Assembly: GCF_000143415.4 (NCBI RefSeq) | Contig: NW_003314289.1 | Coordinates: 1,234,293-1,298,292 of the forward strand | DNA: 64,000 nucleotides | Source: Selaginella moellendorffii | Taxonomy: Eukaryota; Plantae; Lycopodiophyta | Direction of reading: 5' to 3' | In this document: positions 56,156 through 64,000 of the stretch, in pieces | Position numbering within the stretch: position 1 is the stretch's first letter | How the letters are laid out: each line of letters opens with the position of its first letter | Notes under the pieces: generated by a model | Told to the model about the DNA's origin: nothing | Databases searched by the model: none | Seen by the model: the letters and a program-made list of their open reading frames with translations, nothing else | Program-made: the position numbers and the translations under genes

Positions 56156-58729
56156 TCATCGAGACCCTGGCTGAAGCTTCTTCCATCTCAATGGTCCAAG
56201 TTGCAAGCTTTTGCTCTCCATGAGTTTCACCACTCCCTCACATCCGGCAGCAGCAAGCCACGAGCTCGAATCGATCGTCTTCCCGGCGGCACGAACACCA
56301 CAGTCGAGATCCAGGTAGAGCTTCACCGCCGAGACCAAGGTCCCCCACTCCACACCCTTCGGTAGAACAGCCATGCTCTCGACGAGCTCCTGGGCATCAT
56401 CCAGCTTCCCGGCCTTCCCAAGGATATCGATCATGCAGCCGTAGTGCTCTCCCACCGGAGCTATGCCGTGATCCGAGACCATCGACACGAAGCACTCGCG
56501 TCCCTCCTTCACCATACCGCATCCTATCAGCACGCTCGCGTACGAGACCTCGTCCGGCAAGACGCCCTCCACTTCCATCCCCCGGAAGAGCTCCATGGCC
56601 TCTCTCCCATGGCCGTGCCGGGCATACGCCGCCACCATTGCGTTCCAAGCTCTCACGTCCCGCTCCGGCATGGAGTCGAAGAGGCTCTTGGCTTGATCCA
56701 CCTGGCCGCAGCGAGCATACGCCTCGAGCAAGCTCATGGACGAGATCGAGTTCCTGTCCGGCATCTCGTCCAGCAGCCACTTTGCCTCGTCCAGCCGCCC
56801 CGAGCTTGCGTACGCCGCCACCATCGCGTTCCAGGCCACCGCGTCCTTGACAGCTATGCCGTCGAACACCCTCCTGGCTTCCTCGAGGTGGCCGTCTTGT
56901 GCGTAAGCCACCACCATCGCCGTGGAGGATCCCTGCGTTCTCTCCGGAATGGTGGCGTAGAGTGCCTGCGCGAGCTCCAAGCTCCGCTCCCTCACGTACG
57001 CTTGCAGCATCACCGTCCACGAGGCCACGTCCCTCTGCGGCATCCTGTCGAAGATGGCCTTGGACTCTTTCATCTGTCCCGAGTGAGCGGACGCCACTGC
57101 CAGTGCCACCCACGCCGAGACGTTCCTCTCGTGCATCCTGTCGAAGAGCTTCTTCGTGTCGTGCAAGTGCCCGCTCTTCGAGAACGCCATGAGCAAGACT
57201 GTCCAGGCCGTCGAGTTCTCCCCTGGAACTTGCTCGAACAGGTCCATCACCTCCGGGAGATGCCCATACTGCTTGCACGAGCACACCACCATCGTCCAAG
57301 TCACCTCGTTCCAGTAGCTCATCCTCTCAAACACCGCCTTTGCACGAGCGAGGTGGCCAGTCCGAGCATACGCGGAGAGCAGCGAGTTCCAGGCCACCAG
57401 ATCCTTCTCGAGCATGTCGTCGAACAGCCTCCTCACGAGCTCCAGATGGCTGTCGTCGTGAGAGAAGGCCTGGAGGAGGATCGTGTTGGATGCAACGTTG
57501 TGCATCGGCATCACCTCAAACAAGGCCCTGGCATCGTCCCTGTATCCGTTGTGAGAGTAGGCCTCGAGCATCCTGTTCCAAGTCTCCAAACTCCGGTCCG
57601 GCATCCGATCAAACAGCTCCTTTGCATCGTCGAAACAGTCGTTGTCCGCAAAGGCCGAGAGCATGGTGTTCCACGACGTTGTGTTTGGATCCGGCATGAT
57701 CTGAAAGAGCACCTTCGCCTCTTCAACTCGGCCACCTTGAGCATAAGCCGAGAGCATAACGTTCCACGACACCGGATCCGGATCTGGCATGGTATGAAAC
57801 ATGCTCTTCGCTTCCTCCAGCCGGCCATTCTTCGCATACGCATTCACCACCGCGTTCCACGAGATCACATCCTGTTCCGGCATCGAGAAGAAGAGCTCCT
57901 TGGCCTTGTCCACAAACCCGTTCTCAGCATACCCGCTTATCATGGCGTTCCAGGAGATCACATCCCGCATTGGCATCCTCTTGAACAGAAACTCTGCCTC
58001 GTCGTGGAAGCCGCTCTGGCTGTAAGCCACCGTCATGGCCGTCCAAGCCACCACGTTCCTCGTCGGCATGGTGACAAACACCCGGAACGCGTGCTCGAGG
58101 TACCCGTTCTGGGCATACGCAGCAACCATCGCGTTCCAGGTGACCAGAGTTCTCTGCGGGATGGCGTCAAACAGCTTCTTGGCCTTGTTCATCTCCTTGT
58201 TCTGTGTATAGATTGTCATCATCGTGTTCCACGAGATAACGTCCCTGCCCTGCATCCTGTCCCACAGCCTCCTGGCCTTGTGCAGTGCTCCATTCACGGC
58301 ATAACCGGTGAGCATGGTGGTATAGGCCACGGCGTTCCTGTCCGGCATCCCCATGAACAGCCGCGTAGCGTCGTGCATGAGGTTGTTCTCCACGTAAACT
58401 TTGAGCATGAGCGAGTGCGTGTAGTCGTTCCTGTCCTTGATCCGGTCGAAAACCCATCTGGCTTCGACGACGCTGCCGCACTTGCCATACATTTCGATGA
58501 GCAAATTGCTGAGGAACCTGCTGCCGCGGTACACGGATTCCCGGATGCAGGCATGCACTCGCCGGCCTTCCTGCAGGTCCTTTGCATCTCCGCAGGCCTT
58601 GACGAGGCATATGAAGTTGTTTCTTTCGTTGCTCGCTTCCGCCAAGTTCTCCACCTCGGGCTGGAGATCAAGGTTTCTCGGAGCTGATTTGTCAAAATGC
58701 CATTTAGGTGGGTGGCGGATTTTCACCAT
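56156..58729 (-). CDS. PLS-class pentatricopeptide repeat protein with an E-like domain (857 aa)
   Basis: Long run of ~31-aa S-type repeats (DVISWNAMISGYAENG..A..LF..MP), then HYGCMIDILGKAGKL..A and W.TLVSA. No DYW domain. Confidence 0.93.
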   Translation of the reverse strand: MVKIRHPPKWHFDKSAPRNLDLQPEVENLAEASNERNNFICLVKACGDAKDLQEGRRVHACIRESVYRGSRFLSNLLIEMYGKCGSVVEARWVFDRIKDRNDYTHSLMLKVYVENNLMHDATRLFMGMPDRNAVAYTTMLTGYAVNGALHKARRLWDRMQGRDVISWNTMMTIYTQNKEMNKAKKLFDAIPQRTLVTWNAMVAAYAQNGYLEHAFRVFVTMPTRNVVAWTAMTVAYSQSGFHDEAEFLFKRMPMRDVISWNAMISGYAENGFVDKAKELFFSMPEQDVISWNAVVNAYAKNGRLEEAKSMFHTMPDPDPVSWNVMLSAYAQGGRVEEAKVLFQIMPDPNTTSWNTMLSAFADNDCFDDAKELFDRMPDRSLETWNRMLEAYSHNGYRDDARALFEVMPMHNVASNTILLQAFSHDDSHLELVRRLFDDMLEKDLVAWNSLLSAYARTGHLARAKAVFERMSYWNEVTWTMVVCSCKQYGHLPEVMDLFEQVPGENSTAWTVLLMAFSKSGHLHDTKKLFDRMHERNVSAWVALAVASAHSGQMKESKAIFDRMPQRDVASWTVMLQAYVRERSLELAQALYATIPERTQGSSTAMVVAYAQDGHLEEARRVFDGIAVKDAVAWNAMVAAYASSGRLDEAKWLLDEMPDRNSISSMSLLEAYARCGQVDQAKSLFDSMPERDVRAWNAMVAAYARHGHGREAMELFRGMEVEGVLPDEVSYASVLIGCGMVKEGRECFVSMVSDHGIAPVGEHYGCMIDILGKAGKLDDAQELVESMAVLPKGVEWGTLVSAVKLYLDLDCGVRAAGKTIDSSSWLAAAGCEGVVKLMESKSLQLGPLRWKKLQPGSR

Positions 58730-58797
58730 GGCTCTAAATTAACACCAGATACGAATGTTAGAAAACATAGAAGATAGCCAAGTCTTAAACCGGAATC

Positions 58798-60528
<1,731 letters not shown>

Positions 60529-60636
60529 CGATATGATCTAAGACTTCTCTATTAAGCCATAAAAGAACCAAGTTAAACTAATCACTCTTACAATACAAAC
60601 CGTCTTACCAAAATTTAGTTTTGTTTGATCTATAGC

Positions 60637-61713
60637 TTACTTCTTTCTTCTTCGTTTTCTTGGTCGATCATCTTCGTCCCTCGAGTGAGCGTGATCCAGC
60701 CTACGCTCAACACGAATACTGGGAAACGCATCTTGGAGGGCTCCAAAGAATCTTTTCCATCCCACGTAAACACCCTCGATCACCATCGCAGTGATATCCC
60801 TCGGGACTTCATCGACCGAGCCCTGAGCGATCCTGAAACATTCCAAATAGTCGTCCCTGTCCACGAAGTCGGGAGCCTTTCGCCAGCTTCCTCCAGGCTT
60901 GTCGACCAGAAGAACATTGGGAGAGACCATCGTCACGCTCTGCAAGATGTGTGCCAGCATGATCCTTCCAGTTCTCCCGTTTCCATCCACAAAGGGATGG
61001 ATGCTCTCGTACTGGAAGAAGAACCTCCCGCCGAGTTTGAGCAGCTTCGTGGTCTTGTCCTGTGATCTGCTGCTGCTGAGAATCCTGCCAAGATCTCTGC
61101 TCGTCTTCCTCATGAGACCCCTGAGCGCTGAATCGATTCTCTCGGGTCGCATGAAGAAATGCTTGCCGTCTTTGTTGTCTACGTAGACAATCTCGGACAA
61201 GTTCCTGATTCTCCCGGCGATGCTCGGACGAGTGAAGCAAAACATCGACTTGTGAGAGTCGAGAAGCAAACCAATCCCTCCACTGCCGAATTTCTCCTCA
61301 CCCTGTCCAAAGAACCATGGCACCAGTGCTTGATTCAGCCCCCAGACGTTCTTGATCCGCTCGTCACAGTCGTCGTGCATCTCCATCTCCAGGACTCCAT
61401 CCTTGTGGATTGCCTGTTGGGTCTCCTCCAAGGTATCAAACCCTTCGCCCTCGATCTTGTTCACTTGAAAGAGCCATTCTGTGGTGGCTCCAGGTGAGTA
61501 GCACCTTGCCGCCCAATCCTTTCCTGGAGCTCCTAGATTCTCATACCTTGAGCGCATTCCTGAAATCTCTTTCACCATAGCGCTGGTGCTCATTCCCTTG
61601 CCCCGCCAAAAAGGGTTCTCCCGATACTCCTCCATTAGCAAACCCAATGCTTTTGCCCTAATTTGCCAAGCTTTAAAGTCCCAAAAAGGGACAATTAGCA
61701 TTTCTCTTAGCAT
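60637..61713 (-). CDS. Fic (Fido) domain protein, intronless, 358 aa
   Basis: Canonical HPFVDGNGRTGR at 60964-60999, upstream NKIEG inhibitory-helix-like motif, and C-terminal NLS-like RPRKRRRKK. Confidence 0.85.
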   Translation of the reverse strand: MLREMLIVPFWDFKAWQIRAKALGLLMEEYRENPFWRGKGMSTSAMVKEISGMRSRYENLGAPGKDWAARCYSPGATTEWLFQVNKIEGEGFDTLEETQQAIHKDGVLEMEMHDDCDERIKNVWGLNQALVPWFFGQGEEKFGSGGIGLLLDSHKSMFCFTRPSIAGRIRNLSEIVYVDNKDGKHFFMRPERIDSALRGLMRKTSRDLGRILSSSRSQDKTTKLLKLGGRFFFQYESIHPFVDGNGRTGRIMLAHILQSVTMVSPNVLLVDKPGGSWRKAPDFVDRDDYLECFRIAQGSVDEVPRDITAMVIEGVYVGWKRFFGALQDAFPSIRVERRLDHAHSRDEDDRPRKRRRKK

Positions 61714-61728
61714 ATTCTTGTCTTTCGT

Positions 61729-62669
61729 TTAGGGCAAAACAGAGAACTTGGCTGTTCTAAAGTGCTCCAGCTTGCCTTGCGCGGAGAATTTCCACGAGAT
61801 ATTCCTCACCTCGCGCTCGCTCACCACCCAATGCACCGCGCAGGAGAACTCCTCTCCCAATTTCACCTTCTCTGGAACGCATGCGGTGAATCCATAGGGC
61901 ATGTGGATCAGCGTGCTGTCGTCGCAATCTGGCTTGAATCCTCTCCAGATCGCTGGTTTCCTCGTCGCCAGGACCAAACCGGTGGGATAGAGCGTCGTCT
62001 CCTCTCCTACGAATTCCCCTGCTGGTTCCTCTCGCTTGGATTCCAGAGCCACTGTCGCAAGATCGTGATTCCAGACGCTCCCACGCCACGAATCCTCCGG
62101 GCGATCGTCCGTGTCCCGGCTCTCCTCGAGGATTTGGGACGCTGAGAGCGATCCGTCGGTGTTGTAGCTGACGATGATCGCTACCCTCGCATTCTTGCCT
62201 GCAAAGAACAAAGAATCTCTAGAGAAAAGAAAAGAGGGCATGGATCGACGATTCGCTCACCTGGAAGCATGAAGAACACCTCGCCGACCACTGGGCGCTG
62301 AGGGAAATCGATGTCCAGCCCCAGCCAGGCAAGATCGCCATTGGGAAAGACCAGCGTCCTGGAATTTGGGACCGCGGGGTGGATGATCCCGTCCGCGCCG
62401 CAGTGCTCTTGCCGATTGATCAGCCACGATTTGGGCGTCATCTTCCTCTCGGAAGCCCCGGCCGGATCATACCAATCGTTCCTGTGGAACACAACCGAGC
62501 CATCTGCGGCGCGAGATTGGAATGACCTGATGCTGCGGTACGTCCTGGCGATCTCTAGCGAGTCGCTCACCCGCCAGTTGATCCAGATGCCGTGCCAATG
62601 CTGCCAGTGAAATTCGCCAAACCAGCGCCATAGATCTTCGGGATTGAGCTTGCGCGGTTCTTCCGCCAT
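61729..62669 (-). CDS. DUF3598-like double beta-barrel protein, two exons (intron about 62199-62260)
   Basis: W..F..FH...WHGIW, RSIRSFQS, DGIIHP...SRTLVFPNG..AW, EVFF, IIVSY...G.L and MPYG....VPEKV..G..F match the cyanobacterial-type DUF3598 pattern as I recall it. Confidence 0.65.
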
Positions 62670-62684
62670 AGAAATAAAGATTTG

Positions 62685-62757
62685 ACTCCCTGGCAGGATT
62701 CGAACCTCGCCAATACTAAGTACTCATCACTGGCAGGATTCGAACCCTCGACAGTGA
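62685..62757 (-). repeat. Two tandem tRNA T-arm/B-box-like hairpins (17-bp direct repeat ctggcaggattcgaacc)
   Basis: Repeats at 62690-62706 and 62730-62746; the minus strand reads GGTTCGAATCCTGCCAG. Confidence 0.6.
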
Positions 62758-62866
62758 TAGGGCCTTTTAGGTTTCTTGGTTTGGGGAGCGGGAACGATGG
62801 TGATGGAGGCGGCGGAGGCGGCAGAGGCGATGGAGGCGATGGAGGCGGCGGAGGTCGTGGCGAGAT

Positions 62867-64000
62867 ATGTCCTCTATGCCTCCGGCACAGGTAGGGCTGC
62901 GTGGAGAACCACGGCAAGGTATGATCGATCAATTGCGCTTGCCATCTCTTATTTTCGTTGATTGATTCCCAGTTGCTGAGGCATTTCGTTCACAAGGAGG
63001 ATTATGAAAGAAGGCGCCCGATGAAGCGTGACCCGGATCACGAAGCACAGATTTACATCGTCACTTTCTTGGTCCTTAGCCTCTCGTAAGTTTCTTCCTT
63101 TTCTTCCTCTTGTCTAGAATTTAAGGCCTTCTCTCAGGACCTCTGGCGTGGAGATTATCAAGTGTTGCAGTGGGTCTAACCAAGCGTGCGCCTTTCTAGC
63201 ATTTTCGTTTCGACAAACAGTGGCGATTATTTTCGGTGGTGGTGGCGGGGTGGACTATGAAACAGGAGAACACACTTCTTATGGGCGACTGGTATCCTTT
63301 TATCGCGCATTCAGGTCCTGTTTGGAGGAGCCATTTCCTCTCACGGTTGGGATGCTGAGAAAATGGCATCGAGATTTGGTTCCAGCCGGGGGGAACTTTC
63401 GTACCACAGACGTTTATGTCGGCTCCAGGGACTCCTGGCGTCCGTGTTTTCAACTTGAGGAGAGACTGGCTGTTGTAGTCGACGAGCTCGAAAGAAGCAT
63501 CCATGCTGCTGGTGGACGAGAGAGCTTAATCATCACAGCTGCTGGACGATTCTTCTACGATTTCGAGATGATACACCCGTTTGCAGATGCAAATGGTAGA
63601 GTCGGGCAGCTATGTTTGTTTTTTACGCTCCGCCAGGTAAATGTTCCCTTTCATTGGCACTAAAGGACTTTCGTTTTTTCCCAGGTAATGCAGTTGCCAA
63701 CGTTTCTATGGACATCAGTGGATGGCAATTCCTTGGACCGAGAAGGCTTGAATGCCTGCCTCGAAGGACCTGATGCCTCGGTGTTGATCGCAGCCATTCA
63801 GGCTGGGATTGAGTATGGAAGACACAGGGGGGTACGTAGGCTGTGCTGCATTAATCTTTTCTTTCTAGCTTTATAACCTTTGTTTATTCAGCTGGACAAG
63901 ATGCCATTGCGCTTAAACGACGAAGAAACAGCAATGTACAACAGGATGCTGCAGTATGGTCACGCTTACGCCAAGGCGATTCGAATTTTCGACGTCCTCG
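62867..64000 (+). CDS. Second Fic-domain protein, intron-containing, running off the window end
   Basis: GNFRTTDVYVG flap and FEMIHPFADANGRVGQ (63574-63609). In-frame exons 62973-63085, 63138-63636 and 63685 to about 63831. First exon uncertain. Confidence 0.75.

Follow-up and report, generated by a model that had tools for sequence, protein, structure and literature searches.

The window analysed here is a stretch of 64,000 nucleotides from the lycophyte Selaginella moellendorffii (NCBI RefSeq assembly GCF_000143415.4, contig NW_003314289.1, positions 1,234,293 to 1,298,292 of the forward strand), and it ends in two genes encoding a Fic domain, here called Fic1 and Fic2, which flank a gene of the DUF3598/BFA1 type. 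The last 8 kb of the window, on which the comparison was made, are 100% identical to Selaginella moellendorffii scaffold GL377593.1 (assembly GCA_000143415.2) and carry five genes, from left to right a pentatricopeptide repeat (PPR) gene, a hydrolase gene, Fic1, the DUF3598/BFA1-like gene and Fic2. Fic1 (60637-61713, minus strand), supported by a Pfam Fic match and by transcript contigs, is an intronless open reading frame (ORF) of 358 amino acids if its first ATG is taken as the start. The DUF3598/BFA1-like gene (61729-62669, minus strand; RefSeq LOC112348290) has one intron, and Fic2 lies on the plus strand, with a transcript from about 62762 and a coding sequence (CDS) from 63021 to window-equivalent position 64629. 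All three genes lie where the initial annotation of this DNA had placed them, and Pfam profile hidden Markov model matches (Fic, DUF3598_N) agree with their assignment. We consider it likely that these are three independent, transcribed plant nuclear genes which are neighbours by tight packing, and that Fic1 belongs to an old family of lycophytes and ferns.

The Fic1 product matches the Pfam family Fic (PF02661) at E 4e-11 with 44 bits, against a cut-off of 24. Its catalytic motif HPFVDGNGRTGR (residues 239-250; 60964-60999, minus strand) is a complete HxFx(D/E)GN(G/K)RxxR motif, in which H239, D243, G244, N245, G246, R247 and R250 are invariant across an alignment of 14 family sequences, and Fic1 keeps every family-invariant residue. 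In the inhibitory-helix motif VNKIEG (61447-61464, minus strand), E88 takes the position of the glutamate in (S/T)xxxE(G/N), a site occupied in class II Fic enzymes by the autoinhibitory glutamate; this residue is nearly invariant in the family alignment and sits in a helix (62-87/88) that is predicted to precede the Fic core. The AlphaFold2 model (predicted local distance difference test, pLDDT, 79.6; predicted template modelling score, pTM, 0.80) shows the catalytic helix-loop preceded by a beta-hairpin flap (177-186), and a fold search with this model returned 46 Protein Data Bank Fic structures at E<=0.001, with FICD at the top. The protein ends in a basic tail, RPRKRRRKK (60640-60666, minus strand), which resembles a nuclear localisation signal and falls in a region predicted to be disordered (pLDDT < 50, residues 336-355). 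The initial annotation had correctly read the absence of introns, the canonical motif and this tail from the sequence.

The closest copy of Fic1 (L001) lies on another scaffold among unrelated neighbours and shares 88.8% DNA identity over 1049 bases and about 90% protein identity, the DNA homology being limited to the coding region and 39 nt upstream. The basic tail is common to these two proteins only and would therefore be a recent addition. Since the ORF of L001 starts at the equivalent of M27, the DNA homology begins 39 nt upstream of this codon and the conserved N-terminal motif directly follows it, the true start of Fic1 is probably M27 at 61635, which gives a protein of 332 amino acids. 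The annotation of GCA_000143415.2 contains no model for Fic1 and no called gene between the DUF3598-like and hydrolase genes, and no database protein of 197-626 amino acids corresponds to it. The GC content at third codon positions (GC3) of Fic1 is unremarkable, with 0.64 compared to 0.53-0.79 in its neighbours.

FICD/HYPE and C. elegans FIC-1 were the best fold matches of the Fic1 model (E 4e-8, TM-score 0.55-0.58 over about 285-337 columns), ahead of bacterial Fic structures. Fic1 shares with FICD/HYPE the HPFxDGNGRxxR type of motif and the inhibitory Glu-Gly on an N-terminal helix, while the similarity in sequence is marginal (phmmer E 0.003, about 18% identity). Moreover, Fic1 lacks a membrane anchor and, by Pfam, carries Fic only and no tetratricopeptide repeats, and FICD in turn lacks the plant-family signatures PxWR...STS near the N-terminus and EGxYVGWKRFF near the C-terminus. 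Given the Fic-only Pfam content, the phmmer E value and the separate plant clade described below, the sequences indicate that Fic1-type proteins are not FICD orthologues. The best sequence match among solved structures was the bacterial class II enzyme SoFic of Shewanella (E 3e-6, Fic1 residues 216-265 only), a likeness limited to the helix-motif-helix core. With 31.7 bits against a cut-off of 550 for the NCBIfam SoFic model, Fic1 is not an equivalog of this enzyme; it also lacks the winged-helix C-terminal domain, and prokaryotic sequences fall outside the group formed by the plant and eukaryotic members.

In FICD-type enzymes the motif histidine is needed for AMP transfer, and a salt bridge between the helix glutamate and the last arginine of the motif keeps the enzyme off, so that a Glu-to-Gly exchange activates it (PMC8097203). 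By analogy, and judging from its motifs and predicted structure, Fic1 would be an autoinhibited transferase of nucleotide monophosphates, most likely AMP, and it may, as FICD does, also act as a de-AMPylase. Its beta-hairpin flap would hold a target protein, whose hydroxyl side chains the enzyme would modify, and the basic tail may carry Fic1 to the nucleus. The nuclear or defence role proposed in the initial annotation is pure inference.

An exhaustive, profile-free search of 1.84 billion representative sequences with Fic1 gave 265 matches at E<=0.001, of which 30 reached E<=1e-10, the Selaginella paralogues ranking first. The fern Adiantum nelumboides contributes two members (P0013 and P0014), whose nuclear contigs measure 1.7 and 4.4 Mb, and two further plant-side matches derive from transcript assemblies that carry no label; one of these matches, P0003, shares 68% identity with P0013. 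For the next relatives the alignment spans the whole protein, with 21-30% identity (65-79 bits), and they carry an N-terminal PxWR...TS, the inhibitory glutamate and a C-terminal EGxWxGW. Four contigs of these nearest outsiders were inspected and look eukaryotic, with lengths of up to 0.6-1.1 Mb, a sparse coding density and neighbours such as an SH2 fragment, a carboxypeptidase-D-type gene fragment, a sorting nexin of PXA-RGS-PX-Nexin_C architecture and a reverse transcriptase; the Fic genes on these animal-like contigs are intronless and arranged in tandem. An ESM Atlas look-alike search returned a top Fido cluster that is 100% Eukaryota and mostly Mollusca, followed by ascomycete clusters. 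Among 185,579 bacterial and archaeal species represented by one genome each, no match was closer than 24-28% identity over about 220 residues, and the best one, 26-28% identical, reached 39 bits.

In the main tree, inferred by maximum likelihood from 58 rows under LG+C20 with posterior mean site frequencies (PMSF), the plant clade comprises 12 rows, eight from Selaginella and four from ferns or fern-like sources, with support 97/96. Within this clade, Adiantum P0014 pairs with a Selaginella fic-1-like protein (95/75), and the group of Adiantum P0013 is nested among Selaginella paralogues, Fic1 included, in a clade with 100/98 support. The eukaryote-like clade is supported by 99/95, the prokaryotic sample lies across a 93/76 branch, and a quick tree of 106 rows agrees with this topology. 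Because ferns nest among Selaginella paralogues at two places, at least two Fic lineages are older than the split between lycophytes and ferns and, being shared with ferns, the Fic1 family would, on these sequences, be no younger than the common ancestor of vascular plants. The mollusc-dominated eukaryotic group of 'Fido domain-containing proteins' resembles the plant family in its intronless genes and full-length similarity, and is a near neighbour or sister of the plant clade. It differs in forming the separate 99/95 clade, in an extra C-terminal extension found in many members, and in its tandem arrays, which contrast with the dispersed Selaginella genes. On three animal-like contigs from ENA, such arrays consist of two to three intronless Fic genes of the same subfamily (L006:4138-10927, L007:1108-7015, L009:5876-11134) and adjoin reverse-transcriptase and transposase-like (DUF6589) ORFs, which suggests that the genes expanded within one lineage with a genome of invertebrate type.

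Transcription was assessed with contigs from four public runs belonging to four studies, aligned to positions 58700-64000. All hydrolase introns, the 62-nt intron of the DUF3598-like gene and the Fic2 introns of 54, 52, 48 and 60 nt are spliced out with GT..AG ends; since introns are removed with ends appropriate to the strand, the runs are read as RNA and all three genes of interest lie in transcribed sequence. The transcript contigs of the four studies cover all three genes. Fic1 is represented by discrete contigs in two runs (60454-61639 and 60593-61622), and as their ends fall at the gene borders, we read them as arguing for a Fic1 transcript. In the other two runs contigs span Fic1 and the DUF3598-like gene. 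One of these bridging contigs also enters Fic2 on the opposite strand, which makes the bridging uninformative with respect to a single RNA, and this contig was rejected as proof that the DUF3598-like gene and Fic1 are co-transcribed. In the two runs with separate contigs, the depths of the two genes differ 5-6-fold, Fic1 being the lower. In two runs the Fic1 contigs agree with the window at every position. At their 3' end (60454-60640) the Fic1 contigs reach across the 5' end of the hydrolase gene, which comes next on the minus strand.

Five further Selaginella paralogues (L001, L002, L092, L093 and L094), which the sequence searches had met as 'hypothetical proteins' without a Pfam domain, were read at the level of genomic DNA. 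Each proved to be an uninterrupted, intronless ORF of 313-363 codons (L001:6001-7026, L002:6001-7092, L092:5001-6071, L093:5001-6050 and L094:5001-5942) with a complete motif, the motifs of the five loci being HPFVDGNGRTGR, HPFLDGNGRVGR, HPFKDGNGRIGR, HPFRDGNGRIGR and HPFVDGNGRCGR. The corresponding GenBank models P0001, P0004, P0006, P0016 and P0015 cut out the motif-bearing segment (33-99 codons) as a false intron, which explains why they show no Pfam domain; that five public models splice the catalytic motif out of intact ORFs is new here. A further member is RefSeq P0017, named 'adenosine monophosphate-protein transferase fic-1', and the intronless family occupies at least seven Selaginella loci. 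Public annotation thus conceals the family, and as Fic1 is unmodelled and the motif is deleted from five models, domain censuses relying on public models will under-count plant Fic proteins. The paralogue on GL377571.1 begins with a signal-peptide-like segment (L002:6001-6070; MLLRFILAIALVIAVDARA), and on sequence features family members may reside in different compartments, the secretory pathway in this case as against Fic1 with its basic tail. No DUF3598 match was found within 5-6 kb of the five paralogue loci, and no Fic match at the locus of the sole close DUF3598 paralogue (L091, P0169).

Fic2 is a real gene with several introns, as the initial annotation had described, and in the contigs of all four runs, one per study, its four GT..AG introns that fall within the window have been removed; its coding sequence, however, starts at 63021 and not in exon 1. 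According to the spliced contigs, exon 1 (62762-62918, plus strand) is 5' untranslated and contains an upstream ORF (MVMEAAEA...), and exon 2 (62973-63085) holds the CDS start (MKRDPDHEAQ...), which coincides with the annotated gene start. The Fic core, recognised by Pfam at E 2.3e-10 with 41.6 bits against a cut-off of 24, lies in exon 3 (63138-63636) and includes the variant motif HPFADANGRVGQ (63574-63609). Exon 4 (63685-63831), supported by contigs and alignment, encodes the post-motif segment DREGLNAC...AAIQAGIEYG, and exon 5 runs from 63892 to 64000 and on to window-equivalent 64315. The last exon (window-equivalent 64367-64629) follows a 51-nt intron and, like the end of exon 5, was read on the same scaffold (locus L090), so that 629 bases of the CDS region lie past the window end. 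The whole product, with five introns in its gene, has 465 amino acids, as annotated. The upstream ORF (62776-62918, starting MVMEAAEAAEAMEAMEAAE...) lies in a stretch rich in GGC and GAG and, once spliced, stops shortly after entering exon 2, in a frame other than that of the Fic CDS; it may be a translational control element. In one run, a contig departs from the window at 63984 and resumes at the exon junction around 64300/64367, a non-canonical skip of about 313 nt that is either an assembly artefact or a rare isoform.

The motif of Fic2 retains the histidine, aspartate, asparagine and first arginine, but departs from the complete Fic motif with its first glycine replaced by alanine and its last arginine by glutamine. 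At the position of the inhibitory glutamate stands IIFGGGGG, a glycine run without Glu, and the N- and C-terminal signatures of the Fic1 family are missing. As both salt-bridge partners, the helix glutamate and the last motif arginine, are lost, the sequence suggests a changed donor or chemistry, a changed regulation or a non-catalytic role. Alanine in place of the first glycine, and no last arginine, also characterise the HxFxDAN(G/K)R motifs of the kinase Doc and the phosphocholine transferase AnkX, and these two proteins use donors or chemistry other than AMP transfer. The sequence relation of Fic2 to them seen here is limited to the shared domain, and they offer a lead for Fic2 chemistry only. 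Exon 2 encodes a hydrophobic N-terminal segment, IYIVTFLVLSLSTSGVEII (hydropathy 1.88 over 19 residues), a likeness to FICD, which also starts with such a segment; the segment is signal-anchor-like, and Fic2 is very divergent. Its extra C-terminal region of 230 residues gave no Pfam match, and the Atlas search with exon 3 returned only generic short Fic clusters, which were phage-dominated and length-biased.

Fic1 and Fic2 are 29% identical over 147 residues (E 1e-10), and the alignment takes in the post-motif pairs DRDDYLEC/DREGLNAC and AMVIEGVYVG/AAIQAGIEYG noticed in the initial annotation. Its proposal of a local expansion fares less well, given this degree of identity and the position of the closest Fic1 copy (about 89% DNA identity) on another scaffold; the two genes are anciently diverged.

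The middle gene begins with an ATG at 62669 in exon 1 (62261-62669, minus strand; contigs reach 62665-62683), has a 62-nt GT..AG intron (62199-62260; joint 62197/62260, CT..AC ends, in all four runs) and ends in exon 2 (61729-62198; splice joint in four runs) with a TAA stop at 61729-61731. The spliced product corresponds to RefSeq LOC112348290 (P0168, 292 amino acids) and matches Pfam DUF3598_N at E 1.2e-15 with 58.5 bits (cut-off 22). The match to BFA1_C is marginal, with 22.9 bits just below the cut-off of 23.5, and the paralogue P0169, located on Selaginella scaffold GL377572.1 among PPR-type neighbours and 65% identical to P0168, reaches 29.5 bits. Word-based homologue searches with P0168 found only itself and this one Selaginella paralogue, and no BFA1 orthologue; the nearest Atlas clusters are cyanobacterial DUF3598 proteins, and the single-sequence structure model (pLDDT 36) is unusable. 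The protein thus resembles BFA1, a chloroplast ATP-synthase assembly factor, in lying above the cut-off of DUF3598_N and at that of BFA1_C, and differs from it in that the profile match begins at residue 14, which leaves no space for a transit peptide. From these matches, with the wider relationships drawn from Pfam and Atlas look-alikes only, the middle gene belongs to the DUF3598/BFA1 family of the cyanobacterial and plastid lineage and shows no clear transit peptide. In all four RNA runs the gene shows a 12-nt in-frame insertion after 61918, and several substitutions between 61801 and 62640 are common to the four runs; the dominant transcript is probably derived from the other haplotype.

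Downstream of Fic1 on the same strand follow the intron-rich alpha/beta-hydrolase gene of prolyl-aminopeptidase type (58798-60528, minus strand, ATG at 60528) and the PPR gene (56156-58729, minus strand, 857 amino acids), and three successive minus-strand genes are spaced by about 100 nt or less. The distance from the stop of the DUF3598-like gene to Fic1 is 15 nt to the first ATG and 93 nt to M27. The DUF3598-like ORF and the long Fic1 ORF share one frame (61713-61731): one TAA and five codons lie between them, and from this TAA to the conserved Fic1 start the frame stays free of stops. The chance of a shared frame with 31 stop-free codons is roughly 0.08, the TAA is retained in the transcript contigs, and the arrangement may be a coincidence, a fusion relic or a site of occasional read-through. 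On the other side, contig ends set the DUF3598-like gene about 92 nt apart from the divergently oriented Fic2, and this spacer (62670-62761) is a probable shared bidirectional promoter for the two genes. A tRNA T-arm-like 15-mer, GGCAGGATTCGAACC, occurs in this spacer twice (62692-62706 and 62732-62746, 40 nt apart), with 0 copies expected by chance, and neither ARAGORN nor Rfam called a tRNA or other known RNA there. A tRNA-like, intact-looking stretch also lies downstream of the stop of the Fic1 sister copy (about L001 7070-7150).

Several observations weigh against the reading of three independent plant genes with an old Fic1 family, or narrow it. As Fic1 is intronless, splicing cannot tell its contigs' RNA from DNA carry-over, the runs themselves being presumed to be RNA. 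In the inhibitory motif VNKIEG the Glu-Gly is present, but valine replaces the Ser/Thr of (S/T)xxxE(G/N), and both the activity and the nuclear targeting of Fic1 are read from motifs. Fic2 has no settled place in the tree, its end branch measuring 3.26; when it is constrained to join the plant clade, the log-likelihood falls by 0.37 units (approximately unbiased test, p 0.32), so that a common plant origin of Fic1 and Fic2 is allowed rather than demonstrated. The label 'eukaryote-like' rests on the four inspected contigs and one Atlas cluster, most outgroup proteins being unlabelled by taxon. Finally, since no bryophyte, seed plant or algal homologue occurs among the labelled matches, vertical descent of the family is shown for lycophytes and ferns only.

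The origin of the family has to be weighed against a horizontal acquisition of a bacterial Fic gene with subsequent expansion in Selaginella, which is close to the initial description of the genes as bacterial-type and horizontally acquired. The intronless state of the Fic genes in an otherwise intron-rich genome and the patchy distribution of the family among eukaryotes would fit such an event, as would the view that the eukaryotic Fic groups stem from several transfers from bacteria, put forward in a 2015 survey which mentions plant Fic sequences in passing, within a mixed clade of amoebae, fungi and bacteria (PMC4454073). However, no close relative emerged from the 185,579 prokaryotic species, where the best score of 39 bits compares with 65-79 for the eukaryote-like outsiders, the GC3 of Fic1 is unremarkable, and the two lycophyte-fern pairings within the 97/96 plant clade place the family and its first duplications before the lycophyte-fern split. 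We therefore consider this origin unlikely, and a recent bacterial transfer is refuted by the fern members. An ancient transfer into the vascular plant ancestor, from a bacterium or another eukaryote, may have occurred, as the intronless state and the patchy distribution fit it. Contamination was rejected, as the initial annotation had argued, on the basis of the 100% scaffold identity, the introns spliced in RNA contigs and the plant neighbours (PPR and hydrolase genes).

With regard to the arrangement of the three genes, the module suggested by the initial annotation would be a functional AMPylation unit in which the DUF3598-like protein serves as partner, regulator or substrate adaptor and expression is co-regulated through read-through and the bidirectional promoter. 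The extreme packing of the DUF3598-like gene and Fic1 on the same strand and in the same frame, the contigs bridging both genes in two of the four runs and the gap of only about 92 nt from the DUF3598 transcript to the divergent Fic2 transcript speak for such a unit. Yet the adjacency recurs neither at the five other Fic loci nor at the DUF3598 paralogue locus, the two runs with separate contigs differ 5-6-fold in depth, the bridging extends to opposite-strand genes, and the shared frame has an appreciable probability of arising by chance, which together make a functional module distinctly unlikely. That Fic1 should be a recent retrocopy or a duplicate in decay, lacking any function of its own and transcribed as read-through noise from the DUF3598-like gene, is highly improbable. 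The missing gene model, a depth below that of the DUF3598-like gene, and a homology with the 89%-identical sister restricted to the coding region and 39 nt upstream, as for an RNA-mediated copy, would be in keeping with this view, but the 358-codon ORF is intact with all family-invariant residues, and the discrete contigs of two runs end at gene borders. In addition, the two copies are about 11% apart in DNA and 90% identical in protein with both frames open, a pattern that fits purifying selection.

Our preferred reading thus remains that of three independent genes, in which Fic1 represents an old lycophyte and fern family. A wider proposal, which we regard as quite unlikely, is that non-seed vascular plants keep a Fic nucleotidylylation system absent in seed plants, with nuclear Fic1-type enzymes, Fic2 as a membrane-anchored variant whose chemistry differs, and a DUF3598-Fic1 fusion relic or read-through product that would couple a beta-barrel ligand-binding domain to the enzyme. 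Fic-type AMPylation has been studied in bacteria and animals, and no study of a Fic enzyme native to plants emerged from our literature search. For a model lycophyte, the locus and its paralogues supply a defined group of candidates that are expressed and keep the motif intact, and ferns have counterparts. As the family ties to intronless Fic genes of invertebrate-type genomes and not to the sampled bacteria, it also adds a modest data point on the spread of Fic proteins among eukaryotes. The set adds new, partly unannotated members to a known family of enzymes, in a host lineage that is unusual for it.

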